NCBI GenBank assembly: GCA_964304625.1
Contig: OZ199838.1
Location: forward strand, 16,847,469 to 16,911,468
Reading direction: 5' to 3'
DNA: 64,000 nt
Origin: Kudoa neothunni
Taxonomy: Eukaryota; Animalia; Cnidaria
Positions 17,739 to 46,783 of this stretch are shown piece by piece. Numbering within the stretch: position 1 is the stretch's first letter; the number at the start of each line of letters is the position of its first letter. The notes below the pieces were generated by a model. That model worked only from the letters and a program-made list of their open reading frames with translations, had not been told where the DNA came from and searched no databases. The position numbers and the translations under genes are program-made.

Positions 17739-17744
17739 ACTTAG

Positions 17745-17879
17745 TGTTGTGTCCAAGTTTAGCAAAACGTTAGCAAGGGAAAACACGTTGACACAAAAAA
17801 ACAATGATGATGAAAAATGGATTACTCAACTAATTACTAGGTTTGTGTACAGGGCTGGGAAGAGATTATGTACATAACA
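17745..17879. mobile_element. Solo LTR (135 bp)
   Basis: TGTTGTGT...ACATAACA termini, 5-bp TSD CTTAG (17740-17744, 17880-17884); empty site with a single CTTAG in the opposite arm at 31116-31120. Confidence 0.85.
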
Positions 17880-21745: not shown

Positions 21746-22778
21746 TTTTACCGTACTAAATTAACTAGTTATCCATGTAACGGATATCAAAACAATATTT
21801 GAGAAAATAAATATTTTAACGACCGATAAAACAATCAGCTAGGTTCCCTTATTAAGTAAAATCAGTAAATTTTAGAGAAATAAAACTTTTTTTTGAATGA
21901 CTAAAAATTTATTGTAATCTCACTAGAATACAACAAACATCTAAAACAATTGAAATTTAAAATGTAGACATGCGTAAAACATGGTATCGGTATCGGCGAG
22001 TACTGAAATTTGGAGAATTCGTACTCCTTTTAAAAAATGTGGTATCGGTGCAATCCTACCATTTAGTGTTATCAGCTAATTCTTTAATTTCGTCATCAAA
22101 TAGCATGTGATTACGTGATCCCCTCTGATCAATCTCTTTTATTTCATTTAGTGTGAATTTTCTCAATCTTCTTTTGCATACCCCAGTGTGGTATCTCCAA
22201 CATATATTTTCGTTGTTAGAATAATCTTTAATATACATATATTTGTTGTAAAAAAAATTTCTTCCATTTCAAATGGTTTTTAGATGTAATTTGGTTTATT
22301 GGAATCAATCTTCTCTAACGTTGCGCTGGCGGCAAAGCTCTTGCACAAATACATCCAAATCAAGGTTGTTTCCTAACGTGCACACTGGATGTGCATGCGC
22401 ACTGCTAGGTGAAATTCGCCATGCAGTTTCGGGAACTGATTTATTTAATAAATGATTGGAACAATAATAAATACTCTATTTAATAAATAGTATTACCATT
22501 ATTCTCCTAAATCTTAATATTTATTTCGATATTACCCTATAAACAGTGTATCGTAGAAAAACTTTTGATCCAGTTAAAAGTTCTGATTAATTTAACACAT
22601 CGATATGAGTTAGATAACAAAAAATTTGTTTAGATAAAATTTTTAATAACCTGAATAATTATTTTATAGTCTAAATTTTACTATCTGATAATGAATGAAT
22701 CACAATATCCACAAATGAGTGAAATTCGGGTCAATTGTATTCCGAACCGTCAATTGGTAGATCTTTTAATTATCAACC

Positions 22779-25700
22779 ATGAAAATAGCTGGATTTATCT
22801 ACCTTGCTTTAGGCATCTTTCTGAGTTAATTTTAATACTAACGTAAGTTTAGGTGTTTTAGTATCAAGCAAAGCAAATGTTAATGGAAGTCCACGTCCTC
22901 CTACTACACTTGCAGTTACACCTCCAACGAAAACACTGAAATACCAGATTTTGAAAGGTTCGGGTGCTGACCAAGACAAAATTAAACTCAATCTTGGAGG
23001 TTCTGATTATGGAAATGGCCAAAAGTGTCATATAATGCGATCTAACGAAGCAGAGATTACAGTGGATACTAGTAATGCATTACCAGCTGCGTTTGCAGAA
23101 ATCGATACCTGCACTGCCAACGTTATCGAGACTGGGGTTGAAGTTAGTAATAAATGTGTTGTCAACTGTGACACTACTACGAATACTATTAATTACAAAA
23201 AGCTGTCACCAAGAACCAAATACATATATGTCTTCGTCGGCGCTAGCGCAGCTAATGTTAAAGACCAAGTTAAAGGAGCAGGATCAAAAGTATTCGGATA
23301 CTCAATACGTAAATCCGTTTTATTTAATATAAAAATAAATTGAATTTAGCTTTATTGGTTAATCCGCAAATTAGAGTGTCTAAGGACACTACCGACAATG
23401 ATAAGCTGAAATTAGCAGCAATAACATGTGCCCGTGTAGATTGCCCTATTTATTATAAAGATATTAAATATGTAGATGGTACCAAGGGGGCAGATTGTAT
23501 TACTGAGACTTCAGCAAATAAAGTTGATTTTGATTTATTGTTACCGCATTACGAAATGAGGTGCGAAAATTATCCCAGTTTCTTTTACAATATGCCTAAT
23601 CAATATATGAAGGAAAAAATAGCCATCTACGAGCCTCAGTTTTATATTGTAGACAAAACTGAAGGTAAAGTCGGAATTAAATTCACCAATTCTCTATCAT
23701 CTGAAATATGTCTATTCAGCCTTAAAAATGCCTTAACTGAAACCGAGGGTCAATCATATACGTCTGCTTGTGGTGGTACTGATAAAAGATGTTATGCTCC
23801 TTGTAAGTACGTCGAACTTAATGGCATTAGGGGTAAAAAATTTTACAATATTTTGATTCAAACCAGACATCACGACATAAAAGCTACTGGAGATAGTTTG
23901 GATGGTTACAAACAAACTAAATTTGGTACTTCTTATATTAACACGCATTATTTATTATTTTCGTTAGCAATTACTGAACCAGCTGGAGGATTGCTTTCTG
24001 CTTACACTGAGGCTGGTGTTTCGTTTGATGGTACCCCATTTAAAGAAAATACTAATCCACAATTTTCGACATGTACTCTCAAACACTATTTTGCAAACAA
24101 AATCACACCAGGATCTCCAACAGAGACAACGTGCGACGCTAGCAGTTCCAGTAATGGTTCAGATGGTAACCAATGCAAAACTGATTGCACAACAAAATTG
24201 GTGATTAAACAACTTACAGCGGGAAAAGCCTACATGATTGAAATCACATTTACAAGTACCAATACTATTCCAAATAATTTCAAAGAACATATATTCATAA
24301 GAACAAGTAAATCATTATATTTATTTTATAAAATAATGAATTATAAAGATAATGGAAATGGTAAAGCATATGGAGCTACTGATCCTACGAAGACAGACAC
24401 GACAGTCTCTCTTACAGCTATAGCTGTCACCACAACTGAAGCAGATCAAAAGAAAGAAGAACCTACCTGTGAGTATTTGGTAAGTCCGGCTGGATTGGAC
24501 AGCTTTTTCCACGCGAAATGCAATGGCAATACCCCATGTAGAGGAATTTGCAGTGAACAAATTACGATAGAAGACCTTGAGCCAAACGAACCTTATGACA
24601 TCAGGGTGATCGCGGATAAGGATTACGGCATAAAAGATTACACAAATATACGAACAAGTTATTGAAGTTATAATTTACTCTTTAAATTTTTAATAGCATT
24701 GACAACATTAACGATAACACACAAGATCACATTGGATGGTTTGTCATTGAGGGCACGATTAAATTCTTTGGATCCAAGTGCAACTTGCAGTTATACCATA
24801 AAAAAGAAGACTGGTAACGATTACACAGACTATTACACATGTCCAGAGGTGCCGAAAGTAACGACACCTGTTTCCCCTCCAGTAGCACCAACACCCCCTT
24901 CGGCTCCTACTTCCAGATTAAGTTCTGCAGATCTCAACATAGCTAGAATTGCTCTACCAATGGTAACAGATGGTGGTCTAATCCCAACAGCGAAATCTTC
25001 AGTTCCAGATATTTCAGATACACAGCTTGCTGATGTCGCTAACAACATAAACCAATGCTCATCAAATCCGCTTTGCAATTCCATAATATTTCCCGAGTAT
25101 GAAGCAATAAATTCATACAAAATTGTAGTCACAGCTATCGGAAAATCTTCAGAAAAAGAGCATATCGTAGAATCAAGTACTACAATTAACGCTTCGATGA
25201 ACGATACTATTAAGAATTTCTTAAACGAATCTTACATTAGGTGCACCACAAGTAAACCCAACTGACTCCTCAAAATTGATATCAGTCGTCATTACACGTG
25301 ATGGGAACAATTTCATTGTAACCACCACACTTCCAGCTGGCATGAACGATGAATCAAAATGCAAATGGGAGTTACGTAACAGTAGTGTCAAGTCTAATGC
25401 AGTAGTAAGATCTTGCATGAGAAGAAACGTGGACAGATGTGCTGCTTTTGTGACCTGTAAAGAATTCAAAATAAATAATTTACCTGATGGAAATAACTAT
25501 TATTTGACTGTTTACAGTGCTCAAGATGATACAATTTTTGGCGGTGTTGACATACAACAAGGTATATTATTTGTTCACAATGTAATTTAATGTTATATAT
25601 CGTAGGAGCAAAGAGTAGTTCAGGGTGAGCTAAGTAATATTTTTTTATTTAATTTAATATTTTTTAGGGATAAAACCAAACTTATGTAAACAATTATAAT

Positions 25701-25808
25701 TGCCGATATTTGAACTAACCGTTTTATAGAATCATTATTACGTGTGTTGTTGTGGTTGTGGTCGTAGCGATTGTTGGAATCGTGGTACTGAAGAAAAAAA
25801 GAGATTAA
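22779..25808 (+). CDS. Surface-protein family copy C (divergent, single copy, in the palindrome spacer)
   Basis: MKIAGFIYLALG.. signal peptide; same 10-exon layout; shared motifs SPRTKY, LLVNP, HYEMRCENYPSFFY, ILIQTRH, NFKEHIFIRT, CKWELRNS; micro-exons of 19 and 18 nt; TM IIIITCVVVVVVVAIVGIVVL-KKKRD*. The intron-1 donor is ambiguous (GT 22825 or GC 22813). Confidence 0.88.
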
Positions 25809-26782
25809 ATTAATTTTCGTTAATTATAGTTTATAGGTAGTATTTATGATAGAAATTATTCGATCACGTTTCATAGCATGCATTATTTGATATTTTAAGT
25901 TATTAGCTGAATTAATTATTTTTTTCTAATTATGTGATTTAAAAATTTTTCTCTCCGTTTTATATTAACTTTGAATTAGTTTTTGTGACTCTAACTGTAG
26001 TTATAATTTTTATTAATTTCAAGTCTGATCAAATTATGTTAATGAATTTCCGGGTTAAAATATTAATATCTTCAGTTTTATTTTATCGGAAAAAATTATC
26101 ATAAAAAATTTAAATTAGAAAATTTTCATTATCTAATTGCGCAAACTGCCCATCTTCACACGGGATTTATAAAATTTTATCATAGAGGAATAAAGTGAAA
26201 AAATAAATAAATATAAGACTCTTGATTAGCCCTGAGGAGAGATTAAATAAATTATATATATATCATACATTTAACGACTATGATGGCACAGTAAAAAATT
26301 GAGATCATTTCAGAGAGATAATGAAAGTATAAAAACCTGAATAAATCGATAACAACTTACGATAATTCATTTTTATTGCTCAAATTAATCTTTATCCGAC
26401 ACATTTTTATACACTCTCTCCTCAAAACTGTTGTGTAGCCCCTTAATATAAACAAAAATATGTTAAATAATTATATAAAGTAAGATTTCAACCTATACAT
26501 GAACTCTTGTCGCTTAAAATTAAGCCTAACAGTCGCTATAATGAACTTTTCATATTTTTTATATATTAAATTCCACCTATAGAACTTATAAAGTGTATTT
26601 ATCAAGCCAAGTATACTAAAAGTTCCAAAAATAAGGAATTTATTTTAGGACACATCTACTTTAAATGTACAGATAGTTAAACGATAAAAAATGTATATTG
26701 AAATCGTGGATATATAGCTTAAGGTTGAACTACTATAAACGTTCTAAACAACTTGCAGAAGTTCAGTATAGATAAATGTCGC

Positions 26783-27785
26783 GGCTAAACTACAGCATGT
26801 GTGTACCAACTTTGGAATTCGATGAGAACGCTTATTAAAAATCGGCAATATATTTAATTTGTATATAATATCAATAAATATCTACAAAGTATGCTTAATT
26901 CTCGTTTATAATACTTCCTTCGAAAAAGGTAGTCTGATATATACTCAGGCAAGGTTTCTGGGGTTTCGTTTGTGGCTTTTTTGTATTTAGGTTTAAAAGC
27001 GCCCCAAATAGACTCAATCCGGTTGTTGTGGACTTCGTCACTTGAAACAAACTGTCGTTTATAGATAACTCTTCCATGAACGAAGCAAAAACTTTCCAAT
27101 CTATTGTATCCGACCCAACCTTAAGTCCATATTGTGGATCTTTCTTCTGCGTTTTCAACTATGTTCTCAAGAAAATTCTAATTCCTGTAACGGGATATTT
27201 TAAAAAAAACTCACAACTTTCTTCTATTCCCCCAATTAACCAGAATTGTTTGTTCTTTAAAATTCTCCCTGCGTTGTATTTTCTTTTGAAGGCAGCAGTC
27301 TCATCGATTTGAACTACAACGTGCTTGCCTCCAATTTTTGTGCACTTTTTATCCAATTTCGAAGCCATCAAATCTCGAATTACACTCACCAACCTGTTAT
27401 GGTAAAAAAGAATGCGATATCGACACGATGTTGTATTTCTTCATTGGTGGCGCTGGGACTTCGGACAGTGTTGAGGAGAAAGGGAAAAACATTTCCACAA
27501 TGGAAGTTTTGATAGTTAGAAAATATTATATTCACCAATGTCCTTCCTTGCCACCATTTTCATTATCGAGCCACAAAAACCTTTAAGCTAACACCTCAAA
27601 AGTCCAATATTGATCATAGTTTCAATTGTATAATTTATATCATCTCGAAGATAATCATAATAAAGTATTGTTATGGTATCTATACTTTCCAATGTGAATT
27701 CTCTTTTAAACTCGACATGGCGCGAAAATTTACCGAGAATATGCAATACCTTCCGAAGCCAGTACATGTATTCTATAGTTTTGCC
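26783..27785 (-). mobile_element. Merlin/ISXO2-like DNA transposon, degenerate
   Basis: KIGGKHVVVQIDETAAFKRKYNAGR, VHNNRIESIWGAFK; imperfect TIRs GGCTAAACTACAGCATGTGTGTAC / GGCAAAACTATAGAATACATGTAC. Confidence 0.8.
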
Positions 27786-28179
27786 ATTTTCGTGAGCAAC
27801 AAGGCATTAAAATCATTTATGTACCTTTTATTTATTTATTTATTTATTTAATACTTACATTCTTGGAAAATTTTTGCTAAATATTAAGATAAAATTTTGT
27901 AGAATTATAAATATAGGTTTTTGAATTTTTCCTATTCAGTGAATCGCTTAAAAACTTACATATAATTTTTATAGGTATCATTTATGATGGTTTTTCCAAA
28001 AAAGTGAATTTTTAGTTAATGATTCAAGAAACTTTTCTCTATGAAACTGGTTGCATAATACAATATTTTTCATGTTTAATTATGTATGATAATTGGAAAA
28101 AAAAATTAAATAAAATATTTACTAATAAAGTAATAACACAAGAATTTAATGCTTTCGGATTTTTTTAGAAATTGTTTCT

Positions 28180-28448
28180 GATGTTACAAGATTTTTATGT
28201 TTCCGCATTATCAGTGAGCTGACAGTAATCCTGTTCCTATGCTGTTAACGCTGTACGAATTAGTTCCGCCAGGTGTTTGTTTGTGAGGAAGGGATCTGCG
28301 ATGCTTCGACTTTACAAACTTCATCGTTGAATATTTAGTTCCTTTTTAAATTAATTTATACACTAACTTTTTTATTGTACCAAAAATGTTAGAAAAAACA
28401 CTTAGTCAACAATGTGGCCCGCAGAACTAAAAGTAATGCCCACCACTG
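28180..28448 (-). mobile_element. hAT (Charlie/Buster-like) fragment
   Basis: Minus-strand MKFVKSKHR..LTNKHLAELIRTA resembles the Buster C-terminus; TIR-like GTGGCCCGC..GCCCACCACTG ending at 28448. Confidence 0.4.
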
Positions 28449-28619
28449 ATTCAACCGATATATAGATTAATTGCGTGTAATCCCTAATTAATACGTCCTT
28501 GTGTGTTTGGGCCAAACATATGATAACAAATTATTTAATGTATATAATTCTAACAATTTTAATTATTTATTTAATGAGATAACTTATTATAAATTTTTGT
28601 ACGCACAAGCGTTATTTTT

Positions 28620-29480
28620 ATCAACCAAACTAAGATCACGGAATATAATATTGTACAATTCCGAAAATATTGACAACCACAAATTCGAGGATATTGTTTA
28701 TTTTAAGAATAATCTACAGAAGTTAGTATTATTTCTACAAGAATTTGGACTTTTATCCAAGATCAGAATTTGTTCTTATGGAAATATTGTGAAATTGTAT
28801 CTATGGATATAGCTTCCGCTGCAAGAGGAAAAATTGCCACAGAGAATCCTCATTAAGAGCGGAGTCATTTTGTTCGAATTCGCACCTCTCTTTATATTCC
28901 CCCATAAAATTTATATATTTGTGGTGTAGAGGTGTAACGACCCAAGAATTTCTAATGCGAGAATGTGACATTGGGCCTGCCAATACAGTAGTCGATTGGA
29001 AACATTTTCTGAGACGTGTGCCTCTCTTATTTTTTGGAAAACCCGATCAAAATTGGAGGTCCTGGAATTAAAGTCTAGATCGATGAAGGTCTCATCTGTA
29101 AAAGGAAATTCGGCGGTGGCAGAATTCTACAAAATCAGAGTGTTTGGATTGTAAGTGGCATTGATGAAAATGGAAATGTTGAAGGATGGTCCATAATTCA
29201 TTCCGATGGATGGTGTGGTTACGCATGATTAAACGAACTTGGGTATCTTCATGAGACCGTTATTCATGACAAAGAATTTGTCTCCTCAACAGGTGTACAC
29301 ACTAACCGGATTGAAGGTATATGGAGTATCTTCAAACGGAAGTATAGAAGTGTCACCAACAAAAAAAAAGATATGATTTCTTCATATATATCTGAATGGT
29401 GCTTTCGAAGAGTCAGCAAAGACAAACTCTTAACTAAATTAATTAGACAAATTAAAAGCATATATAATTTTAATTATAGT
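28620..29480 (+). mobile_element. Merlin/ISXO2-like transposase pseudogene
   Basis: Manual translation: KIGGPGIKV*IDEGLICKRKFGGGR, IHSDGW, VHTNRIEGIWSIFKRKYR, YISEWCFRR; stops and an internal deletion; ends not defined. Confidence 0.75.
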
Positions 29481-30749
29481 TATTTTCTTCTCATAAATTT
29501 TCGTGATATTACGAGAATATTTATCTCTATACAAGACACAACGTTAAGTGATCTTATTGGTATTAATTATCATATTCACTTAATTTTTATATATTTTATG
29601 ATTAAGTTTAAAAAAATTTAATACTTAACTAAAAATATCATATTAAAGTTAGTACATTCCAATTGTTCGATTTTAGCTTGTTTGAAACTTGAATCGTTTA
29701 ATTAAGTTGGATCAAATAATAATTAAACTAAGAAAGGTTTAGATTTGAGTCTGTAATAGACAGAAAATATACGTTTTTTACGTCTTTAAGTAAGCATATT
29801 CATCATCAATTAATTATTTCACGTTTCCTCTAACCTACTAGTCTAATATAAAAAATATATTTTTGCAAAATAATTTTTCGCTTGAAAAAGTTACTATATA
29901 AGAAAGGTAACTTATGAAATCAATTATTCAAAATTCTAGTTGCAGACATTATTAGGTGTCATCCACTGAATAATGTCACATGATTTCGTTTATTATCTAA
30001 TTTTTATAAAAATTAACTTGTGATATTTAATTATTAAAATATAATTAATCTATGCTTTTTCAATTTTATTGTAATAGTTATTTGTTTTCATAATTTTAAG
30101 CCAACACTCTACAAATATGTGTTTATGTGTAATTTGCGCGTGCGTATTTTACAATATCCAAAACGTATATTTCTCTTTAATATAATTAGTAGGTGTAACA
30201 TGCGGTTTAATATTATGTCACATTAATAAACTTATCGAAAATCACTATAAATTGAAAAAATCCTTGTTATTGCATAGTGTATAAGTCTAGCATAAATACA
30301 AAATAGTATTTTGTGTATTTTTGTAGTATTGGTATTATTACTGACAAATTAATTTCTTATATGGGAGGTGAATAAATATTAATTTTTTTAAACACATCCT
30401 AAAAAATATAAAACCTAAAAATTATAAATAACTTAACTTAAAAAAATAAATTGAAACAATTTTGGTGGAAAAAAAGATATAACTTTTTATTTCAAAAATA
30501 AAAAACAGGTACAAAAATTTATAAACTAAAATAGATTATTTCCAGTATTTTTACACTTATTAAATTACACTAAATAAAAAATATATATCTATAATAAGCG
30601 TTTTTCTTGATAATAAATGAAGAACTTAACTTTAATTATTTTGCTTCATACTATATTTAAGATAATTTTAAAAAGGTTTCAAATGGATACATCCTCGAAT
30701 AACCTACTAAAAGTGCAAAAATAATGCTGATTTTAAGACAAGGACCCGA

Positions 30750-33700
30750 ATAATAGAGATTGCACGTGGTTTCGATATCGCACGAAGCTGATTTTTTGTG
30801 AAATTTGTTGAGGAAATTTTAAGCTTATTTCTGAATTTTAATACGTAGATGAATGCATATAATTAAGATTTTTACCTTAATTTACTGGAATTTTTGAGCT
30901 ATGTTACCTCATATGTCATAATTTCATATTTTATTACCAAATAAAAATTTGGTATCAGTGTTTTTTTCAAAGATAATTAAATTGATTTAGGAAACAGAAC
31001 CTTTCTATATAAGTTACGCTATAGTCAAATCTGTCTAAACATTTTTTTAGAATGACAAAAATACTTTCCAACCCTAATTTTATGTCTAATAATTAGAAGT
31101 GAATTTTTTAAGTGGCTAAGTTAGGCCTGTTCAGTTTGCTTTTGAGATAATGCAAAATAACACATAATAAAGAGGAGTGAATTAAATTTATTCCAGAAGT
31201 GTCTTATTTTTAATATTATTAGTATGAACTACTAATTTTCTTAACGTGTTTGGTTCAAATCTATATCTAGCATGAATAAAATTTTTCCAGCGTATGAAAA
31301 CGTCCGTTCTGACATTGAGCTGGACGCTGGTCGGCTGTACACGTTAGTTGCAATTTTTTAAGATTTTCTGTCTTTGAGTTTTCCCAATAAACGAGCGGAT
31401 TTTCGTAAACTTTGTTGACTTTTTCTCGGATGTACAGTTGAATTTCTGATTGAAAATCTTCTGAGTCACTATCCAGTTCATAACATATTGAGTGGTTTTT
31501 CAAAGGATGGGGTTCTTTGGGATTAAGTCTAATTTTTTTCAATGTTTGTTAAAAGCAATGATTTACCGTCAAATTCTTTTTTAAGTAGATAATTTGGTTC
31601 AGCTATGCCAGAAAAAACGACTCAACGTGGTTTATCACGAAATTTAATTCTTTATTTCGCAGATCTACACAATAAATTTGAATTTTTTAAAATTTGGGTG
31701 GAGAAAAGCCGCGATTTTATGGTTGATATCAATATATTGTGTGTCTTTTTCGTCCAATAAACTTTCCAAATGCATGCAATAATCGCCCGTAAGATTTTTA
31801 TGTGGCTTTTTAATCATTGCTTTGATACGATGAAATACAATAAAAACCTAACGATAATATAAAACACGAAACTTAAACGAATTTCATCATGTGACGATGG
31901 TACCTTCACCCGCTCCAACTGATCACAGAAATCGGAAAATATTTTGAAAAATTCAACTACAACAACACATTCGTTCTTGTCCAATCCATCAAAGTACTTT
32001 TTAGCTGGATGATTCTCTATCACACCCTTCGAATTATCGAAACACGCCACTAACGTTCTATATCGATCGCAGAGACCTCTCCATGGTCGCGTAGCTGAGC
32101 CCCATTGTATTTTCACTGAAAATATAATGGACTGTAAATCAGCTGTTTTATGAACAGATCCGCACAGTTTGTCAACAATCACCCTTAGTACGGATAAACC
32201 GGATGTGCCGCTTGTGCTGAGATCCTAAGCTACACAATAAACAAGTCGAAATTAGATATTATAGCAAAAGCAAAATTTATTTATAAATTTATTTGTGATA
32301 AAAACATATAATCAATATATTAAAATAGATAAAAATAAATTATTTAAATTTAGATTATAACAGTTTTATCTTGATTTACCAAAAATAAGTATGAGAGATT
32401 AAGATAGCATATCGTTAAGTATATCACTTTAACATCAATTTAATACATAAAATACCTTGAGATATAATAGTGTTAAGGTGGTGAGCTGTACATCTGGTTG
32501 TGTTAAACTCTCTTAGACCCCGTAGATTGTTTTCTGCGGAATCATAAACAATTCTTAGATCAGATTTGTTAAGTTAAAATTTACTACAAAATTCCGTGCA
32601 GATTTTATTTATATTTTTTGCAATGCGTTTTACAGGAAAATAGATCATGTCGTATTGAAAATGTTGAAGGGTGAAATTTTTAACAAATAACACTGATATA
32701 TCAATGAATGAGTTGATTTTAGCATTATCAGTTCAAATATCAACGTTTAGGCTCATACTTATTCATAGTAATTTTTTAACGCATTTTTTTGATAAAAATT
32801 TAAGCCTAGCATTAGGTTCACTGAACTTTCTGTTTAAGAAAAATGCGAAGTTTATCATCTCAGTAAATGATGCACTTTCCGTTATTGAAAAAGAAGAGAT
32901 TGTTTCAACTACACAATTAGCAATTTTTGTGTCAAACATTACCAGATTTGACAAGCTTAAATCAACAATAGAGGGAGGTGAAACAAATATTTCACTAATT
33001 TTTATATCATTATTTGGTTGAGTATGTAATTTATTATGACTAATAAGTTTCCTATTCTCGTAAGAAGATTTATGCGGAAATGTTTTGTTGCACCTTGTGC
33101 AAACAATAAAATAAATTTAGGATGTTTCAACTCCGTCTTTAGTAAAGATGGTACAAAAATCGTCCCATTCTTTAGAATGCGATGTAGATTATTGCTAAGA
33201 GCAAAGTCTCCTAGCTTTCAAAGCCTCTTCAACAGTTTCCACACTCAAGTTTGACATAATGTAAATAAAAGCGAACACGAACACGAACAAATGGACAGTG
33301 TCTGCTAATGTTGTAAAAATAAGATATAAAATTAAAAAAAAATTCATAATAATGTAATGAGTGGTATTCAATTCTTTCTTTTCATAATAATCACTCCGAT
33401 TCCAATAGCAACGACTACGACTCCTGCTACTGCCGAAGCTATAATTCTAAGGAATAATAATCAAACATAATTAAACGTAATTAAAAATACATGGTATTTT
33501 TTGATCTAAATTAATATTAAAAATGAAAAAACTTACACAACTTACGTTGATTTCATTGTATCGTGAGATTCACCTAAAAATATTTTATCAAATTTAGTAA
33601 CTATTTTGTTTACCTTGCTTGATTATCGCATGACCGATTATTGTTGGATCACTGCTCACATATACAGTGAGATGATAATCACTAGTATCTTCTATGTTAA

Positions 33701-36700
33701 GAATTTCAAAACCCTTACATAATGGAAGGGTTTCACAACCACTGTCATTGGCACCGTTACACGATTTTACCAAACTCTTTCCATCTTCTGAAGAGTTACG
33801 TAACTCCCAACCACATGTGCTTTCCGGGGCATCGCTCCGAAGTAGAGCTGTAACTTTAAGCTTGTTCCCTTCGCGTTCTATGCCAATGATTACTTTTTTG
33901 TTGACATGTTCACTTATTGAAAAATTATCTAATATATTAAAAATTAATGAAAATAATTTCGTTAGAAGTATTATTAAAATCGAATTACTTTCAGGGATAT
34001 CAATAGTGATTTCCTCTGAACGACCACCAACGGCAGTTACCAACATCTGGTATTTTTTGGAACGATCGTAAAGATTAGTATATATTATTTCGGAACATGT
34101 AGGTAATTCAGTGCATGATGTTGTCGTGACAGTGTTATTTTCAGGGTTGGATGTAGGTTTTCGATCAGCAGCTGATCTAGCAACCTCAATTTTAGAAACC
34201 TTTGGTATGTTTTTAGGCTTGCTTGGAGTTGCTACTGTTTGGGGTGGAGTAGCTGGACATTCGTGGATCAACTCAAAATTTTTCCCCTTTTTAACTTTAA
34301 CTTTGTAGCTGCATAGAGCGAAGGGATCTGGTGTCGACAACGAACCCACCACTTTGAAACCTTTGTCCGTAAATTGTTTTTTAAGTGTCAGCTTTGACAT
34401 TACTATGAATTTAATCATTTTTTATCATTCAATTATTTCATACGTGTTTTTATTTGATGCTCTTTGAATCCATACTCTTTGTGAGCAACTATCTTAAGAT
34501 CGTATTCAGTTCCTGGAGTTAAACCAACAATTTGTTTAGTTTCTTTGCAAAAACCTCGGCAAGGATAACTATCAATGCACATTGCACATACATATATATC
34601 CTTTCCGCGAGGGCTGATATAATATGCACACGTTACGTCTTCTTTTGCGATTGTTCCACCTCCTGTAAGGGCTGTAATCACCGCCGTTGTCTCATCTATT
34701 ATTGGTGTTATGGCAGGGAATGTTGAGCCTGTGGCTTTTTCTACATATTTATTATACACAACATATTTATCAATTATTATACCAGTCCTAATGAATATAT
34801 GTTCTTTGAAATTTTCCGGTACGCCACCCGTACCATCTGCCCCAGGTGTTATTACAATAATGTATGGCTTCCCATTTGAAAGTTCTTTTATTACTAAGGC
34901 TGAAGTACAGTCATTAGAACAATTATCGTTATCTCCACATTTTGTTTCCCCGGTATTAGTAGGTGGTGGTTTGTCAGCAACGAAATGGGTGACAGTGCAA
35001 CTTGTAAATTTAGGATTTGAATCAGGTTTAAAGAGGCGCACATTTAAAGACAGATTTTCATGAGTTATGGCAGATATTAATTCACCATTGGCCGAAGTAG
35101 ATAAATTAACAACTATCCGAGCATAATTAAATATATAAATATTAAATTGTTACCGAATTTCGTTTGTGTATAACCTTCATATGCATTGTCGACTTTTTCT
35201 AGTGGAAAGTGTCTTGTTTGAATCAACACGTCTAATATTGTCTTTGATTCAGTAAAAGTAAGCTCTACATTATTGCAAGGAGCATAGCAAGGTTTTCCTT
35301 GTCCACCACAATTTGAAACATATTCGTTTGTAGTTCCTTCAGCATTAGCTTGGGATGACCCATCCCTAATACTAAAGCGACATATTTCGAAAGGAAATTT
35401 ATTCGTGAACTTAAGTGAATATTTATTTTTCTGAGCCGAAGCGTAAGCTACATAATATTGTGGTTTGTAAACATCAATTTTCGATAGAGTATAATTATTT
35501 TGAAGCTTATAAAAGAAACTTGGATAATTTTCACATTTCATTTCATAATAAGGTATCATTAAATCAAATTCTACTAAGTTTGATTCATTCGGGGTGGTGC
35601 AAGTACCTCCTTGCGTACCTGTCTTAAGCTCAACTCCTTTATAATATGCATGGCATTTAACTTGCGGACATGTGGTTGTGCTAAATTTCAATTTACTTTC
35701 TGCTGTAGTAGTCACAGCGACCTTTGGATTTGCAAGTAATCCTAAAAACATTTCAGTTTGAAGAATTTTTATTAATCATTTATTACGTAACTCGAGTCCA
35801 AATACAGTTCCTCCATTGCTTTTCCCAGCGGCGTCTGTAGCATCATTACCTTTAAAAACAACAATATATTTCGTTCTTGGTGAAAATTTATCAAATCCCA
35901 GCTTATTGTCACTTCCCAAGCATTTTCTAACACATTTATTTGGACCATTAGTTTTATCTGTTTCAGGACAAGGATTTATATCTTCATATAATGTAGCTCC
36001 ATCATTCGACTTTTTAATCTGGCAGTAACTTTCCCCGCTGTATGCGCTTCCGCTCAATATAAGTTGAACTTTCTTTTCATTATTATCTTCTACTATTTGA
36101 TATCTGAGTTCATTCGTAGGAGTTTGACCCTCAACTTGACCTTCCCCGACGGATACATTCTGAAAAGTGCATTTGACTATACTTTATTCAATTTAACCGC
36201 AAATAAATATTCCTAATTACATAGAGCAAGAAAAAATACTCCCAGTTGGAAAAGTGAACTCCTCATTATATTTTTTTATAATGTATAGACGAAAATATTC
36301 GTTATATTTAATAAATGCTTCAATCTAATTGAGTTTGGTAAATAGTATGAATGTTATTAACAATTTATAAGTAACAAACAATATAGGATTAAAAATAATA
36401 ATGTAGTTATTATTAAATTATAATTCTATTTTATAATCCCTACCAAAAAATGAATACTCACCATATCAATGAGTGTTTAGTTTACTTTTTTATACATTAT
36501 TTTTATAAAAAGTAATTTGATATTTTTTCCTTTAATAATAACATGTTTTTACTACTATTCATATGTATTTAAATTAGATAACTATTCGTACACCTAAACC
36601 ATGTGTAGATTAATTTTTCTAGAAATGGGTTCGGATATGAAATTTAGCTTAATACATTTATAACTTATATTTAATTAGTTATCATATATATATATATATA

Positions 36701-36720
36701 TAGAAATTCGAAAACTAGAA
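30750..36720 (-). repeat. Inner right arm (inverted B unit)
   Basis: Reverse-complement match to ~12140-18350. Confidence 0.93.
33368..36266 (-). CDS. Surface-protein family copy B2 (mosaic of B1-like and B3-like sequence)
   Basis: ATG at 36266 (MRSSLFQLGVFFLAL|FKCTFQN); same introns as B1; 3' half matches B1 (ORF translations identical, constant coordinate sum 48860). Confidence 0.9.
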
Positions 36721-37120
36721 TTCTTATTAGAAAGCCAGCATATGTTTTGTAGTCATAAAACAGGTTTCGGTGTAATGCTTTTACCTTCAATGTGTGCTCA
36801 AGAGCCATCGATTAATTTATTTACATACAAGCAAATTTTATTTATTCTATTGATAGGATAATAATTAATAATTTTTTAAGATTGTGAATTATACCTAAAG
36901 ATATGATCATCCATTCGATTTCATGAGTTTTGAAAAAATGATTTAAATTTTCAATTTTTAGCGCGCTTATTTTTTAAATTAATATAAACCATTGTATTAT
37001 AAGTAAGTGATTAGGTTAAACTTAATAAAGTTTGAAATGGCCAGGATAATATTTTTTAAAAATGTTGTTTTTATCCAAATGCAACTCGTATAAAAAGCTT
37101 TTTTAATTTTTTCTAATTAA

Positions 37121-38107
37121 CCCTCTAAGCTAGCGCAAAATTCCATCCTTTAACGATCTTGGGATAAAAAACATTCCTGGCTTTTTTTGCTTAAATTTAC
37201 TCAAAAAATAATTTCGAGTTTGTTTGAAAATTTTTAGTAGATTCTATCAATAGAATTTGGAGTATATTTACATCTATTACAAAACTCGATCTGGTTCGGC
37301 ATGGCTTGGATCAATCAACGTGGATTATTTTCAACGGATGGTAAGGTCTTGCGTTAAGTGTAGCGGGCACGCGAATAAAGACAATGTGAGAAAACAACAA
37401 TCTGGTCGCCAGAGAACCCGGACTTTGCCGAGGGGGGCTACATAAGTAGTGGAAAAAACAAGTTATTATCCGACTCACCACTAAGTGACTGGATATCATC
37501 AACAAATTCACTGAAAGTACTTATCTTAATTCACCCACCAGAATGATCCAACTAGTCCAAGCTTGCTCAAATAATCCCATTTTTTTACATTACCAAAATT
37601 GGCGCATAATTAAAATAAAATCTCTGATGAAGTATTCTTCAACATTATAATTCAAAAATAAACTGTTGTTGGTTAAAAAACCCGATATATGTGATAAAAT
37701 CGATGTTTCTACGTCCATCTGATAGGAGAACCCCAATATTATACCAACGGAAATTTAAAGTGATCGACGAAGAATGCTACATTGGATTAGGTGAGATACT
37801 AATTGCATATTTTCATCGAAATTTGTCGATATAATTTTACAGGAGTTTCTCATTTAATTATTTATAATTTTGCAAGTTAATATAAGCAAAAAAAACTCTG
37901 GGATGTGATTCACCCCAAGTCCATTATATGATGGAATTTTTTTGAGCATGACCTGAACTTACATTTTAGCCAAGTTTTTGATAGGTGGTACGTTTAATAA
38001 ACATAGGAGAATAGTGTAAATTTAAACTTTCTATATGAAGGTCATAGAATTTTATTCCCAGATTAAATGTGGTTTGGGGTGTAATACACCCCAAATCCGT
38101 TAGAGGG
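37121..38107. mobile_element. Non-autonomous piggyBac-type element (987 bp)
   Basis: TTAA|CCCTCTAA ... TTAGAGGG|TTAA; subterminal palindromic repeats GGGATGTGATTCACCCCA (~37900) and GGGGTGTAATACACCCCA (~38077). Confidence 0.8.
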
Positions 38108-38999
38108 TTAATTATTTACATGAAATTTTCATCTCATTAAAGTCAGAATACAAAATAGTGTCTCATTTTTTGCTATATAACCTTTCTTAGAAATTTTCTG
38201 TGTCGAAAATTTGTTTCGTAGAAAACAACTTCATATACTTCATCTTACATTTGACTATTTAAAATAATACTAACTGTCACTTTCTACTTCCATTGCATTT
38301 TATGCGAAAATAAATTTTTTAAATTCTATATTACACGAAACTCATTAATCGTCATTTTTCTGTACTACAAAATTAATATTTAAGAGTCAATTAAATTAAC
38401 GTCTTTTTGTTCATAGAACCACTTTAGTTACAGCGCCGTAGATCCCTAAAAATTATAAGGTGTCTTTAAACATTATAACTTAAAGGTTAAATATTGACTG
38501 AACATTTAAAAGGCTCAGAAAAAATCTTGAGTGAAATTGCGAGCCAAATTTATTATACCACCAATATTAAAATGAAAAATTCCCCAAATAAAAAAGTTTC
38601 TCCGCAATTAATATACACTTTCTTTTGACTCTGTCAATAAAATTAAAGTTCTGATATTATATCGCATTAGCCAGTCGGCAAATAAATAGATTATGCGTTC
38701 TTAGTCACAAAAATGGTAACGGCGTTGCCAATCTTGTCCAATTTTTTCTTTTTTTTTTGAAAGGGTACATAATCGCAAAGCGTTGTACCAAAAGTAAGAA
38801 ATTATCGAACACTCAAAAAAATTGAAATATAGTCGTTGTTGTTTTAATCATGAGAAATCTTCAAATAGATATTGTTATTACTAGAAAAATATTTTATTTC
38901 AAAATTAAATATGCGAAGTCAAAGCCCACAAACGACAATTTAAAATTATAAATTTGAATAACTCATCCCTAAAGCCCAAAGAAAATGGAATTCAGGCTA

Positions 39000-41900
39000 A
39001 AAGAACATGTCGAAAATTTAATAAAATGAACACATAAAATGCATGAAAATATTTTAATTGCGATAAAAAGAATTTGGTACGAGATAGAAATAAAAGTTTT
39101 CATATTTTATTAATGTGTCATGCATAATTTTAAAATTATTATGTGCAAAGTACTAAAGTTAACAGAGGGTTTCTGTTACAAATATTACGAAATCGGGTAT
39201 ATTCGTGCGTCACGGTAGTTACAATCAACGATTATGATATAATATTTTATGATAATCATAATCAAAATAATATAGACAAAAAAGTTTAAACTTAATCCTT
39301 ATATGTTTTTGTTTTAAATGTCTAAAAATAATGATTATTTATTGAATTAAAATTATACGGAGGTAAAACGATTTACACCGAAATTTAAGTTTAAGTTTTG
39401 TTTGATATACTTATCTGGATTAATCGTCGAATAAATTAATATGTAAAATATGGCCGAGCTATTCTGCCGCAAGTCAACTTTTTTTATTTTTTGGTGGCTT
39501 TTAGATTTTATATGAGATACAGTCAACTAAACCTAGTACAATTTAAGGGAGTGGCTATTGACACGGTAAATAATTAAATATAACAGATTCTAAAAAATTA
39601 AATCTATAACCTATAACCAGCTTGTAAGTTGGAGTTGCTGAGATTAAAAATTCTCGTCGCGCGTGCGGAGTTGCTGTTTAGGATTAAATTTTACCGTGTC
39701 AATAGCCTATGCCATAATTTAATTGCTTGGGTTGGACCAAATAGTCAAAGAGGTGGAAATAATTGAATAAAAAAATCTATTTTAATCTTATATAATAAAG
39801 CGTTGATGTAAAATAACTCAAATTGGTTAGGGCAGTGGTTCCCACCGGTGAGGAAAAGGGGAATTTTTAAACAATTAATGAACCGCTCTGGTGGGACGTA
39901 ATGAATCCTGAGTATTGATGTGACACGGATAATGGTGAAAAAATTTGGCAATACGACATACGTTGAAGTCAATATCACGATTTTCGATACCGCTTATTTT
40001 TATGTTACGATTAACACCGTAAAAAATATGAAAAGCAATGGCAAATTATATAAAAATTAATAATAATATTTAACGCGTCCTTTACCCAAATAGAATCAGA
40101 ATAGTTTGAATCTCCATCTTGTCTCACTTAGAATCGTACAGCTTTTTTGATTGAAACTAATATAATACTGATTATTTTTATATCATTCATTTTTGATTAA
40201 TTAGCCTCATATACACGAAAGTCTTTCGTAATGAAGGTTGGATTACCAAGAGTTCCATTTGATGCTGTTTTTGACGGAATGAAGAACTAATGATGTTAGT
40301 TTTTATGGTCCATTGATAAATTAAATTAGATCAGATCGAACACATTTTAATTTTACTGGAAAAGATGTATATATTAATTGCTTTCAAATTTTTGTTATAG
40401 TGAGCTTTACTCGATCTTTTAAACAATTTAAATTAAAAAAATCAATACTTTTTAAAAAGGTGGGGCGCGATAGATAGAAGGTTGGGAAACTCTAGACCAG
40501 GGGTTCTGTTACTCAATAAAACCTCGCGTTAACTAAAGGAAAAATTATGTGGCGCGTATAAAATGATTTATCTATTTTTCTCCTATATTATCTAAATTAG
40601 GTCAATTATTTCAGTATATCATGGAAATGTAGAAATATTCTTCAATAACAATGATTCTAAGATTTTTGAAAACGTTTTTATTTACGTCACAACGTTTTCA
40701 TGTTCATTTTTGAAATATTAGTTTAAATTACACTCAAATTTTTTATTTTTACTAAAAAATTCTACGCATGACAATTTCTGAGTCTTTCTAATTACTTCTA
40801 ATTTCATAATATTTAGTATCGTCATATTTATTAATAAACATAATACTTGTTAGTTTCAATAAAAATTCTAATTGGAAAGCTATTAAAATTTAGATTAACA
40901 GTTTTTACACAAAAAGAATAAATTATAAACTAACTTGACGTTATATTTATATTTTAATGGCTTTACAAAAACATTATGAATAGTTTAATTAATGTCCGGA
41001 TCCTGTTTATTGGAAGTTTATGTGGTTATCTATAACGATGACTTAGATGACTTAAGTTGCGGTCATTTCTTAATAAAAAAGATGGCTATTCCAATAGACA
41101 ACATTGTTCCAATAGATTTAGCTTTTATTATAATTAAATTATTTCTAGCTCCTGGGAGATTATTTAGGTACTAAATGCTAAAAGTAATTAAAAAGAGCAG
41201 GTTTAAAAAATTAGAATGAATATGTCGCCTATAAATTAGAGTTTTTAGGATTTAAAGTAGTGGACGTGTGTCCATCTCCGAGCCGCTTACCATTGAATTC
41301 TCGTAAAAACAGTCACGCCAAATAAACCGTGAATGTTCCCTTACTTATTTTAAAAGATGAAGAAATATCTAATAGTAAAAGCCATTTTCTATTTCTTGAA
41401 CTGGAGATGATCTAACTCAAAGTATCTCCTTTTCTTGAAACTTTTTCAAGTAATGATTTGCGTATTTTAATAAAATTTCAGTTTATAGATAGAAGATACG
41501 AGAAATACAATATTGCTATTCATTTATATTTTTAATTATTTATATAGACCCCATAATGCTTTAATACATTATTTTTTAATAATTTTTTCTAAATTCCTAT
41601 AGTATATAATTATAATATATTTTTAAATTACAAATGTAATGATTAATCGGATTATATACAAAAATATTGCTATGACGAAGTAGCTAGAGCTTATAATGTA
41701 ATAATCTTGATTAAATATATTTAAAATTTATTTTTTATGGTACGTTCAGTCTACAAAACAGCTACAACTATCTACGTAAAATAATGATAAAAAATCAATT
41801 TATAATTATTAAACTACATTATATCGGGATCCTGCCGTATGCATATAATATTAGCTCCAACGAGTTTGAAACCTATGGAATTTCTAAAATTAGACAATAT

Positions 41901-44900
41901 GCGTAATATCCAGAATAATATTTTATTCAAATATATATTATTTATAAAATAAAATAATATTAGTTTTTCAAATGCGTGGATAGTTTCTATTCATGCATAT
42001 TACTGAAGAATCTCAAAAGTATTTTGAATAAAAAATGTAAACCTTTGAAAAATATATATTTATTTGAAAACAAATGATTACTTATTAGTCTAAAATAAAG
42101 CTAGTATAAAAGAACTGTAATAAGATTATTCAAAAATTATGAAGTGATATTTGTGTTATGAAAATAGAAACTGATTAGTTTATTATCTTAATAAAAAAGG
42201 GGAATTAAAAGTTTACACTCATCAATCTTTGAGTAAATTTATAGTTATTTGTATCATATAATAAATATAAAAAACATGTTTGTTATTTTTTTGTTTTAAT
42301 AATATAAAATTACTCAGGAAAAATTAAAATAAAGTAAATAATTGTGAAAACTTCTTTATAATTCTGGAAAAAAGTTGACTTTATTTAAAAATGCTCACTT
42401 TATTTAAAATAAACCCCACCATTAAATTGATGACACATAAAAATTGAGATAAATCAGAAAAATTTCTATCTAATATGATTAATATGAATGTTAATGTATG
42501 TTTTTATTTATTTTTTCTGTATACCATAAAAGCTCCTATTCCTACGATAGCTACTATTGCAACCACAACAGAGACTATGATACTAAAAATAAAAATTAAA
42601 AATCCATCCTTTCACATTTTACATTGTAGTGTTTCCTGATCTAAATAATATTATAGTCTAAATAAACAAACATTATAATTTACGTCGATTTACTTCCAGT
42701 TGCGCCTATAATTTAGTAAATAGAAATTGTATAAATAATTATTGATACCTTGATCTATTTCAGCTGTTCCTAATACTGTTTCATCCTGACTGTGATAAAC
42801 AGTCAAATGGTAATTTGTTGTATCTACTACATTTTCGATTGTAAATTCTTTGCAACTTGGGAATACTGTGCAATCTTCACCAGTAATTTGAGTGCATTTC
42901 TTAATTGTTGGTTTTGCAAGATCGTTTGAATTAATCAGTTTCCATTTACAAGTGGATTTCTCGTTTTTACCTTCCGGGAGTTTGGTTGTTACTTTCAATA
43001 TGGTACCCTCACGGACAATAAAAACTAATATTGTTTTGGTTACATCAGAGGGAGTTTCCGGTAACAACTCTAAATTATAAAGTTTCTGTTATATTCGAAA
43101 CGAAAAATATTTTAAGAATTACTAGTAATTATAAAATATAAAAATAATATTAATATTAATTTTTAGAAAATACTTGGTTTTATAATAATTGTTTCCTCCC
43201 GAGATCTACCTACAGCTGTTACCAAAACTTGATATTCCTTGGAAGCATCATAATAATCACTGAATACAATACTTCTACACAGCGGTACTTCCGTACATGA
43301 TTTAACAGAAGTATCGTTAGGTATAGACGGCTGATTCCCTGTACCGGTTCTGGCAATGACATTTAATAATGATGATAATGTGGGGTTTTCCTTATTTTCA
43401 ATACAAGTATAAACAGGATCCCAAGTTTCTCCACTTTTCACATTTATTTTGTAATGACACATTGCATCACTCATTGGTGTTGACAATGTTCCTACAACTT
43501 TAAAACCTCTGTCTCGTTTTTCTTCTGAGAGAGTGAGTCTTGAAAATGCTATTATACTATAAAAAAGAAACAGAAATTTTTATTTTTACTCGTTTGGAGA
43601 TTCTCATGTACAATAGAACCATAATCCGCGTATGCGACTATCTTGATGTTGTAGGATGTGTTTGGTTCAAGTTCCACTAGCGTCTTAACCTCTTTACACA
43701 ATCCTCCGCAGGGTTTTCTATCAAGGCATGTCGCTTCCACGAATGAGATTTCATTAGTTTTACTTATAAAATAATCACACACCGGCATGGTTTCTGCTTC
43801 GGGATTGCCTTGAATTGCTTTTACTATAGCTGTCGTTTCCCCCATTGTTGGCTTTTCGGAATTAAAATTTTGTCCATCCTTTTTAACTACCACATATGAA
43901 TAAAATGGTGCCATATTTACATATTACGAGTTTTAATAAATAGATATTCCTTAAAACCGGCGTGGTTATCTATATTTTGAGGAGATATTTCAAATATAAT
44001 AGGTTTTCCTTCAGGTAATTCTTGAACTGTAAAGACAGCGCCACAAGTATCTACACATTTGTCGGATGAGCATTTCGCGTCAGTTAATGGGGTATTTTTA
44101 ATTCTATCTGCAACGTAGTATTTGATTGCACACTGATCAAATTTAGTGGCACCTTCGGTGGATGGTGCAAGTAGTGGAACATTGATATTGACGCCAGTGC
44201 TTGTAATGGAAGATATAAGTGCGCTAGCATCTTCCGCTTGCTCGATGACAGCTAAAAGGCATTAAAATAAATTTAAAATAATATTTTTACCAAATTTTTT
44301 AAACGTATGCCCTTCAAATGTGTCATCACTTTTTTTCTCCAATTGATTGTGCCTTGTTTGAATTAAAATGTCAACAATAGGTTTAGTAGAAGTTAGAGTG
44401 AGTTCGACGTCATTGCAAAGGGCGTAACACTTTTTGCTTGTTCCTCCTCCGCAGTTCGATTGATATTCATTTTGACCTCCAGCATTACTTGCTGCATCCC
44501 TTATTTTGAACAGGCATATTTCACTAGGAAAAGCGTTCGTGAATTTAAGATGATATTGAGTTTTTGCATTAGCAGACTTGTATTTAACATAAAACTGTGG
44601 ATTATAAATATCAATTTCCTTTCTCATATAATGATTTGGCATATGGTAATAGAATATTGGATAATTAATGCAACGCACTTCATAGTACGGAACTCTTGCT
44701 CCATAATCAACCAAATTGACGCCATTTCCATCAGCTTGTGCTATACAGCTTGCTCCCGCAAGGACATTCTTGTATAGAACATTTTTATAATAAATTGGAC
44801 ATGCCACTGGTTTGCAAGTGATCGCTTTCAGCATCAATAATTGTGAATTATCTGTTGAAGCCTTTATATCAGGATCAACCAATAGTGCTAAATAGATATA

Positions 44901-46783
44901 AAAAACATAATAAAAATTCAATCATACGTATTTCAAAACCATAAACCTTTCCACCTTTTTTATGTTCTTCATTTTTAAGATTATTTGCATCTGATCCATC
45001 TTTTACATAAATATATTTTGACCTTGGAGATATCTTAGAATAGTCTAGTTGGTTATCACTGCCCCCACAAGCTCTTATGCATTTATCAGATATACCATCC
45101 TGTGTACTTACGCACCCCGTAAAATCTTCAAAGTTGTTCCCAGCAATATTCTCTCTCATTATGCGACATTTTTTATCGGTAGTATAGTCCGAACCTTTTA
45201 GTTCAACATGAATTTTCCAAGTGTTAACATCTGAACGAACTATTTTATAATAAACTTCACGCGCTGTAGTTGACACTTCGGTATTGATACAGCTATATAT
45301 GGCTAAAAACAAATAACTAGGTTAATATGTATATTCTTCTTACAAGAGTAAATGATCATTGAATAAAATAAAATCATTTTTTGATTCTTCGAGGAAATAT
45401 CTTACCGATGGTTAATCTGATATTGTCTATAAAGAATAATTCTCGCGTATTATACGGTATTCATGCCTTTCAATAAAGTTAAATTGATTTTTAGTTAAAA
45501 TTAAATATAAATAATGCTATATTAAGAAAATAATACAATTTCTAATTATAATCTCATAATGATATATAAGAAATGCTATTGATCTTCTAACTCTTGCGAC
45601 AATCACCACAATTCATAATTTAAAGCCACAACAAAACATGTTTAATCTTATAGGAATTGAATAAATTATTATTTTGCCAGAAAGCATAATTAAGAATTTT
45701 TATAACATAACTAATTTAATATTTGTCGGAATAATTGGCAAAAATATATACAAATATAATTTTTCATAATTTATCTTCAAAAATCAATTAACACAGTTTG
45801 GATCAGTTGATATAATCGAGTGCAAAATTATTGATTATCTAAAAAAATAAAATTCAATTAAATTTTTGGCTATATTACAGAATCTGTAAAAACTTCGTCG
45901 GAAAAAACCAAACATCGGTAAACTTAGCATATAGTTTTTAAAGTAAATTAAACGTCAAAATATATACAAAGAGAGCACTAATTTCCATTTCAACAAACTT
46001 TCTTCTAAACAATAAATCGATTATATACCCAAGAAAACTCTCCGGATTCTTATTTGTGGCGTTTATATAATTCCTTTTAAAAGTACCCCAAGTCGCCTCT
46101 ATTTTGTTTGTGTGAACTCCATCACTCGAAAAAATCTCCTTTTGTGGACAACGGTTCCATGAAAAAAACCTAAATTTTCCAAATTTTTGTATCCGTCCAT
46201 ATTGTTGTTGAACCGTCTCCCACGTTATCGATTATTATTCTCTCAATAACGTCTCGGTTTCTGTATTGAGAAATCGTTAGGAAGCAGTTCTCTTCTTCGT
46301 CAATTCCACCCACCGTCCAATGTTGCTGATTTTTCATAACACGGCCAATATTATATTTCTTCTTCGAGATCGTGGTCAAGTCAATTTGAACAATTATTCC
46401 ATCACTTCCAATTTTTGTGAATTTATCATTCAATTTGGAAGTCATGAAATCTCTTATAATAGTCTTCCAATCCATTATGGTTGAATTTGACGTGATATCA
46501 AGGTGTTGTCGAACCTAATCAAATGTCGTAGTTGGATGCTTGATAAACGATTTCCACAAGGGGAACTTTGACATTTCGAAAATGGTCCCAAACCTCAATA
46601 AGCACCTTTTATGGCATTTGTTACATCTAATCTGGTAACCATCGCCCGTATCTTTACGCGGAACCACACTCACACTATCTCCGCTCGTACATTGGCAAAA
46701 GCTATGTAATAGTCCGATATTTTGTAAATTTTAAATTTTGTAATCGATATCACGAAAATAGCCATAACCAAAAATGGTTATTT
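39000..46783 (-). repeat. Outer right arm of large inverted duplication (pairs with 1-~7700)
   Basis: Reverse-complement match to 1-7700, alternating identical and clearly diverged patches. Confidence 0.93.
42504..45377 (-). CDS. Surface-protein family copy A' (intact inverted partner of A)
   Basis: ATG 45377 MILFYSMIIYS..; exon 3 open across the site frameshifted in A (ORF 44262-44921); same TM exon ending YRKNK*. Confidence 0.9.

Follow-up and report, generated by a model that had tools for sequence, protein, structure and literature searches.

How can one gene be closest to different sister genes, depending on which of its segments is considered? The question is posed by B2, a gene in a 64,000-nt stretch of chromosome 1 of the myxozoan Kudoa neothunni (contig OZ199838.1; this whole stretch is hereafter called the window), which belongs to a cluster of paralogs predicted to encode membrane-anchored proteins with fibronectin type III (FN3)-like modules. 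The initial annotation of the window read B2 as a mosaic of its paralogs B1 and B3 and saw in it a candidate for an undescribed diversification system. In our assessment, B2 is very probably a genuine patchwork that arose by repeated interlocus (ectopic) gene conversion among neighboring paralogs of the FN3-like family. The mechanism is a textbook one, of which the locus is a very clean and very recent example. The copies at the center of the analysis are as follows.

33368-36266, minus strand: B2 gene, within the right arm of a large inverted duplication
36266-36221, 36176-35787, 35741-35154, 35112-34783, 34740-34444, 34402-33989, 33928-33614, 33573-33546, and 33446-33368, minus strand: the nine exons of B2, supported by reading frames and GT..AG borders
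12594-15492, plus strand: B1 gene, intact, within the left arm of the inverted duplication
55443-58341, plus strand: B3 gene, intact after splicing of a 42-nt intron
chromosome 1 16912260-16915142: B4 gene (locus L004), 792 bp beyond the end of the window, 87% identity

B1, B2, and B3 are about 93% identical to one another; two further copies, C5 and C6, form an inverted pair on chromosome 2 at 80% identity.

Segmental relationships of B2

The three-way alignment of B1, B2, and B3 contains 585 variable sites, and the way in which these sites group the copies is strongly blockwise: the last 169 all unite B2 with B1, the approximately 60 sites preceding them unite B2 with B3, and a run of 19 + 7 sites is private to B2, B1 and B3 being identical there. 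Over 2.9 kb, the nearest relative of B2 changes about nine times. Parsed with a copying model in the direction of transcription, the gene resolves into segments that are B4/B1-like (86 nt), B3-like (30 nt), without donor (32 nt), B1-like (119 nt), again without donor (119 nt), B3-like (170 nt, to position 35711), without donor (139 nt, the private block), B1-like (206 nt), B3-like (531 nt), and, for the remaining 1,467 nt within the gene, identical to B1. Preceding this identical segment are the following features.

35732-36266, minus strand: fine mosaic in exons 1-2 and the start of exon 3, made of short B4/B1-like, B3-like, B1-like, and donor-less pieces
35572-35731, minus strand: B2-private block in exon 3, its core about 64% identical to every other copy
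35366-35571, minus strand: B1-like stretch of B2, upstream of the B3-like tract
34835-35365, minus strand: B3-like tract of B2 (12 mismatches in 531 nt), from the last part of exon 3 across intron 3 into exon 4, most of which it includes

The similarities that the initial annotation had listed along B2 were recovered in this analysis. Intron 1 is B1-like (43/44 positions identical to B1 vs 38/44 to B3), the peptide KCTFQNVS is common to B2 and B3, YQIVEDNNEKK is common to B2 and B1, and the block following AESKLKF is private to B2, with B1 and B3 in agreement. The part from RDGSSQANAEGTTNEY through DKPPP...GADGT is B3-like, and the switch to B1 was correctly placed at 34834, where perfect identity starts exactly. 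The overall description of B2 as a mosaic of B1 and B3 stands insofar as both contribute, but the start of the gene is equally B4-like, and B2 is without a close donor over about 290 nt in total.

Between 34835 and 35209, within the B3-like tract, B2 and B3 differ at only two positions (35085 and 34841), whereas the identity of B1 to B2 across the tract is 82%. Introns follow the same pattern, introns 2 and 3 of B2 matching B3 at 45/45 and 41/41 positions and introns 4-8 being identical to B1. The B3-like patch is internal, with the B1-like stretch 35366-35571 on one side and B1-identical sequence from 34834 downward on the other. As to the private block, of 110-140 bp, identity between B1 and B3 within it amounts to 89-97%, and a search of the whole 40 Mb assembly yielded no donor, the best matches reaching 80-82%, a figure in which the conserved flanks are included.

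The proposition that no single tree accounts for these relationships was borne out by three kinds of analysis. A 3SEQ-type excursion test of B2 as derived from B1 and B3 was significant at p ≤ 5e-5 (0 of 20,000 permutations). A GENECONV-type run test, applied to six copies, returned, among others, B1-B2 (34833-33388), B2-B3 (35083-34842), B3-B4 (34610-34199), B1-B4 (35531-35407), and C5-C6 tracts at a global p ≤ 0.0005, and the B1-B4, B3-B4, and C5-C6 tracts all fall within a global p ≤ 0.0015. Phylogenies were computed for segments picked after seeing the data: in the segment 35209-34835, B2 groups with B3 (support 100/100) and a B1 + B2 grouping is rejected by the approximately unbiased (AU) test (p-AU 1.6e-4), and in the segment 35741-35600, B1 groups with B3 (97/96) and B1 + B2 is again rejected (p-AU 0.0125). 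The number of segments in the copying-model parse was uninformative, column-shuffled alignments yielding equally many, so that significance was judged from run lengths and excursions. The GENECONV-type and phylogenetic comparison of B1, B2, B3, and other copies that the initial annotation had suggested as a check thus uncovered significant incongruence, and segmental conversion or recombination between paralogs is supported by permutation tests and segment trees alike.

B2 is not special in this respect, since B1, B3, B4, and C5/C6 are mosaics too, all local copies taking part in the exchange. No significant tract in the six-copy run test linked a copy on chromosome 1 to one on chromosome 2; the exchange is therefore local. 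Breakpoints lie within exons, in ordinary conserved coding sequence (for example, that at 34834 is 50 nt ahead of the donor site); because they are located away from module borders, they indicate homologous exchange rather than the shuffling of domain units. Exons 2-4 show high synonymous divergence (dS 0.3-0.58, with dN/dS of 0.2-0.85), so the exchanged pieces are old variants and not new mutations. Neither exon-wide dN/dS nor 15-codon windows provided convincing evidence of positive selection, a few windows having pN/pS of 1.1-1.4.

The identical tract shared by B1 and B2

The B1-identical segment of B2 is part of a much longer tract that runs beyond the gene and connects the two arms of the inverted duplication.

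31116-34834, minus strand: B2 side of the perfect-identity tract, which by exact extension matches 14026-17744 at every position over 3,719 bp
14026-17744, plus strand: perfect-identity tract, B1 side (inverted partner)
17745-17878, plus strand: 134-bp element, found in the B1 arm only, that has TG..CA termini and is accompanied by a 5-bp target duplication (CTTAG)
1-18151, plus strand: left arm of the inverted duplication, pairing with 46783-30850
30850-46783, minus strand: right arm, containing B2 and gene A' (about 42750-45279)

The arms are about 16-18 kb long and, outside the perfect tract, 93-96% identical over most of their length. From the last part of exon 4, the tract continues through introns 4-8 and exons 5-9 to a point 2,252 bp past the stop codon, disregarding exon, intron, and gene borders. 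At one end, it stops exactly at the 134-bp element, beyond which the arms are 88% identical; at the other, it stops where B2 turns B3-like and is 18% different from B1. Heterology blocks the extension of heteroduplex DNA, and the presence of heterologies at both ends thus fits a conversion tract. The 134-bp element resembles a solo long terminal repeat; no second copy is present in the window. A scaffolding artifact was considered as the origin of the inverted arms and ruled out, as the window contains no N (zero gaps).

The initial annotation had envisaged a shuffling of ectodomain pieces. The largest tract does not conform to this picture: it covers the membrane-proximal half, the exon for the transmembrane (TM) helix, introns, and 2.25 kb of intergenic DNA, and it homogenizes these regions rather than diversifying them.

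Probable gene conversion and its alternatives

Collectively, these observations suggest the following scenario. When a double-strand break occurs in one copy, a neighboring paralog, whichever way it is oriented, would serve as the repair template, and a piece between tens of bases and a few kilobases in length would be copied in with no crossover. The older short tracts would have come first, then the exchange between B2 and B3, which was followed by two differences; a very recent arm-to-arm conversion between B1 and B2, with 0 differences in 3,719 bp, would have come later, halted by the 134-bp insertion on one side and by the 18%-divergent B3-like stretch on the other. Such events appear to be heritable and to occur on the evolutionary time scale, rather than being somatic or programmed. 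Their net effect would be a homogenized membrane-proximal half, with old divergent variants patchily common among the membrane-distal modules.

The sequence of B2 was checked against reads in the form of Logan unitigs from two runs of the source sample (X1 and X2). Unitigs specific to B2 match exactly, at a depth of 6.7-8, in the upstream DNA, exon 2, the private block, and 35191-35349. The unitig 34886-35220, in which B2 equals B3, has a depth of 13.2 in X1 and carries the letter peculiar to B2 at 35085, the X2 unitig having that of B3; unitigs common to three or four copies have depths of 23-30. This scaling of depth (1x for unique sequence, 2x for B2 = B3, 3-4x for three or four copies) fits the assembly. 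The unitig in which B1 equals B2 ends exactly at 34834, as expected of a branch in a de Bruijn graph. Alternative letters in the unitigs at B2 are paralog letters only, at a depth of about 7 and in contigs that drop rare variants.

Several points weigh against gene conversion among the known copies as the full explanation, or against the sequence on which it is based. The private block is without a donor in the assembly, so the known copies do not account for every piece. HiFi coverage was only about 7x, the sample contained both host and parasite, and haplotypes had to be purged from the assembly. Among the listed unitigs, which are short, none bridges 34834, and the piece over 34835-34885 is absent from the list; thus, the unitig evidence fits the assembly but falls short of all junctions on a single long read. 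Furthermore, the B1 = B2 unitig 34696-34834 has a depth of 23 in X1, about 3.4 times the single-copy depth of 6.7, where 13 would be expected for two copies, and the assembly has exactly two. The same bin in X2 is almost empty (1.4). Either such values are noisy at this low coverage, or the assembly lacks a copy.

According to the genome paper, the K. neothunni genome was recovered from yellowfin tuna (Thunnus albacares) sequencing data and comprises 40.2 Mb (N50, 12.0 Mb) in three chromosomes and an 18,219-bp mitochondrial contig, assembled from about 7x HiFi data with hifiasm-meta, scaffolded with YaHS, and subjected to purge_dups and manual curation (PMC12239612). In such a low-coverage meta-assembly, from which residual haplotypic duplication was removed by purging and by hand, B2 could be a chimera that arose when paralogs were collapsed or wrongly corrected, or when the assembler moved from one haplotype or strain to another; a perfect repeat of 3.7 kb might entangle the assembly graph, and the depth of 23 in X1 exceeds the two-copy prediction. 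We nevertheless regard an artifact as unlikely. The window is free of gaps, the junctions lie within 0.4-3.7 kb, well below the typical length of a HiFi read, and the independently built unitigs of two runs reproduce the B2-specific pieces exactly and at depths of 1x, 2x, and 3-4x. The B3-like tract contains two B2-specific letters (35085 and 34841), one of which is seen in the X1 unitig. Mosaics of the same kind are found in B1, B3, B4, and C5/C6, and a haplotype switch, which mixes alleles of B2, would not yield similarity to paralogs.

The mosaic could also be the product of programmed somatic rearrangement for antigenic variation, with B2 or a similar copy as the rewritten expression site, in the manner of the mosaics of the trypanosome variant surface glycoprotein (VSG), Borrelia vlsE, Anaplasma msp2, or Babesia ves1; this was the tenor of the initial annotation. 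Several features are compatible with such a mechanism: the family is very large (at least 150 places), and its products are predicted to be rich in Cys and anchored at the surface; variation clusters in the membrane-distal modules, with some 15-codon windows at pN ≥ pS; and one conversion is extremely recent. Moreover, antigenic variation, its mechanism being unknown, has been reported in some myxozoans in a preprint on Sphaerospora molnari, which proposes other, unrelated families (10.64898/2026.02.11.705288). However, none of the six family genes in the window lacks an exon, the signal-peptide and TM exons included, and truncated donor cassettes were not found among them. Flanking repeat arrays are missing, the interval 30000-40000 containing only four or five trivial AT-rich micro-arrays. 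Tracts take in intergenic DNA and mostly homogenize, and a single B2 sequence is present at uniform single-copy depth in two runs, although the power of this observation is low at about 7x. The likeness to the four systems thus consists of segmental mosaics in the exposed part of a surface protein. In Kudoa, unlike in those systems, we found no expression site with an archive of silent cassettes, no truncated donors, and no delimiting repeats such as the 70-bp or 17-bp direct repeats, tracts reach the constant region and intergenic DNA, and heterogeneity within the sample was not detected at a depth of about 7. Without a cassette archive, repeat arrays, or an evident single expression site, the case for an undescribed system akin to VSG mosaics or vlsE could not be sustained, and we consider programmed rearrangement very improbable.

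Finally, an origin without any conversion, through repeated duplication and unequal crossing-over of genes that were chimeric beforehand, combined with uneven divergence, is scarcely credible, for even though B3, B4, and B1 are in direct orientation, so that unequal crossing-over is possible, and the membrane-proximal half may simply evolve slowly, this scheme is at odds with some nine donor switches in 2.9 kb that include internal patches, with intron and intergenic DNA 100% identical over 3.7 kb vs 93-96% elsewhere in the same arms, with the rejection of a common tree by AU tests, with runs of 60-169 congruent sites that permutations place beyond rate variation, and with the inverted orientation of B2 relative to B1 and B3, where a crossover would invert the interval instead of pasting a patch. 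The inversion of B2 and the internal position of the B3-like patch therefore point to non-crossover conversion and not to unequal crossing-over.

Interlocus gene conversion is a familiar process in clustered gene families, such as the major histocompatibility complex (MHC), plant R-gene clusters, and globin genes. The Kudoa cluster shares with these the non-crossover tracts of short to kilobase size, mosaic genes, incongruent segment trees, disregard of exon borders, and a strong bias of exchange toward members of one cluster, events between chromosomes being rare; it differs in that the family is FN3-like, belongs to a myxozoan, that is, a parasitic cnidarian, and has at least 150 module matches in 40 Mb. 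Arm-to-arm gene conversion is also known from the ampliconic palindromes of the human Y chromosome, to which the Kudoa locus is similar in its inverted arms of about 16-18 kb, the 12.7-kb spacer, and a long perfect tract attributable to non-crossover exchange. Unlike the Y palindromes, the Kudoa arms are only 93-96% identical outside the one 3.7-kb tract, so that homogenization is occasional and not continuous, and a third and a fourth copy outside the palindrome also exchange sequence with the arm copies. In Plasmodium falciparum, chimeric var genes arise by ectopic or mitotic recombination. A large repertoire of complete, individually expressible surface-protein genes, mosaics formed by homologous exchange, and the lack of a silent cassette archive are common to var genes and the Kudoa family; the latter offers no evidence of expression, mutually exclusive expression, subtelomeric location, or somatic exchange, and the protein fold and the lineage are unrelated.

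It is conceivable, although we think it rather doubtful, that the FN3-like family constitutes a variant-surface-antigen repertoire of Kudoa, in which ongoing conversion between clustered complete genes would make new membrane-distal combinations and selection would keep divergent patches, such as the private block. If true, this would amount to a var-gene-like strategy in an animal parasite. Myxozoans are economically important parasites of fish, and a surface-protein family of at least 150 places that exchanges segments is a candidate for studies of host interaction or immune evasion. Annotators and population geneticists should also take note that conversion between paralogs will mimic polymorphism. 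In the available text of the K. neothunni genome paper, gene conversion figures only as GC-biased conversion, no discussion of paralogs or gene families was found, and very few parasite RNA reads are reported (PMC12239612).

The FN3-like family and other features of the locus

Exon 1 of B2 encodes the signal peptide of the predicted product. Its FN3-like modules, which number about seven and are stapled by Cys, come from six large phase-1/phase-1 exons, after which a 28-nt exon and the last exon complete the gene with a TM helix and a tail of four residues (KRKN). The joined reading frame is open and contains 30 Cys. Intron borders were set by eye and checked by reading frame and against the other copies, a greedy intron finder having been discarded because its introns were over-long. 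Searches and the fold model were based on single exons or open reading frames (ORFs), the joined frame being checked for length, stops, and Cys count only. The stretch that the initial annotation took for a single exon 4 proved to be interrupted by a further intron.

34741-34782, minus strand: 42-nt intron inside the stretch first read as exon 4

This intron is in frame and free of stops in B1 and B2, contains a stop codon in B3 and B4, and is 41 nt long in C5 and C6; once it is spliced, B1-B4 are all intact. If retained in B1 or B2, it would add 14 residues, and it may be a case of the intron retention reported in myxozoans.

Pfam searches with the exons gave only FN3 hits below the curated cut-offs, confined to the exon 4-5 stretch (PF25059, 25.2 bits against a cut-off of 39; PF00041, 17.6 bits against 25), and no match for the remaining exons. 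An AlphaFold model of the membrane-proximal module, built from an alignment of 21 paralogs, has a pLDDT of 83.6 and seven strands, and its top Foldseek matches in the PDB are almost all FN3 domains (CD45 d3-d4, integrin beta4, titin), with modest scores (E ~2e-3, TM-score 0.5-0.6). An ESM Atlas search with exon 3 returned no usable match. Each of the three K. neothunni chromosomes contains matches to the membrane-proximal module, which together occupy no fewer than 150 places (305 candidates). An HMMER search with the exon 6-7 ORF against 1.84 billion representative proteins found, outside this genome, nine short unnamed metagenome fragments only. One of these (L039; ENA ERZ28624939 scaffold_9927, 1343 bp) is a collinear stretch of a relative that covers exons 4-7 with 48-67% amino-acid identity, and a metagenome contig from another sample (L040; Logan SRR33849685, 2036 bp, GC 24%) also encodes a relative. 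Because relatives occur in metagenome contigs of other samples, the family extends beyond this genome, and its further carriers are probably other Kudoa or other myxozoans. No paper pairing Kudoa with fibronectin type III was found in the library searched. Judging from these predictions, it is a very large, undescribed family of putative FN3-like single-pass surface proteins of K. neothunni.

Altogether, the window contains six family genes (A, B1, the spacer gene, B2, A', and B3) and one retroelement. The 12.7-kb spacer between the arms (18152-30849) accommodates one of the genes. The members of the B2 subfamily on chromosome 2 are listed with the remaining genes.

1400-4000, plus strand: gene A, complete family gene in the left arm, paired with A'
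22900-25600, plus strand: spacer family gene, complete
42750-45279, minus strand: gene A', complete, in the right arm
chromosome 2 8549309-8552215, plus strand: L005, same subfamily, inverted partner of L006
chromosome 2 8473933-8476823, minus strand: L006, same subfamily, 75 kb from L005

Compared exon by exon, A, the spacer gene, and A' are 26-52% identical to B2 at the amino-acid level. B4 also has a complete exon series that includes the signal-peptide and TM exons. The L005/L006 pair, which represents the chromosome 2 copies C5 and C6, has several significant common tracts of its own and is 99-100% identical over the equivalent of 35740-35610 and other stretches. In L005, the counterpart of the 315-nt exon of B2 (33928-33614) measures 314 nt; L005 may carry a frameshift near the end of this exon and be a pseudogene. 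A Pfam search with the ORFs downstream of B2 detected nothing. The 500 bp upstream of the B2 start codon (36267-36767) are 65-84% identical among the copies vs 98-100% for the 3' half and the downstream DNA, which suggests that the regulatory region may be private to each copy.

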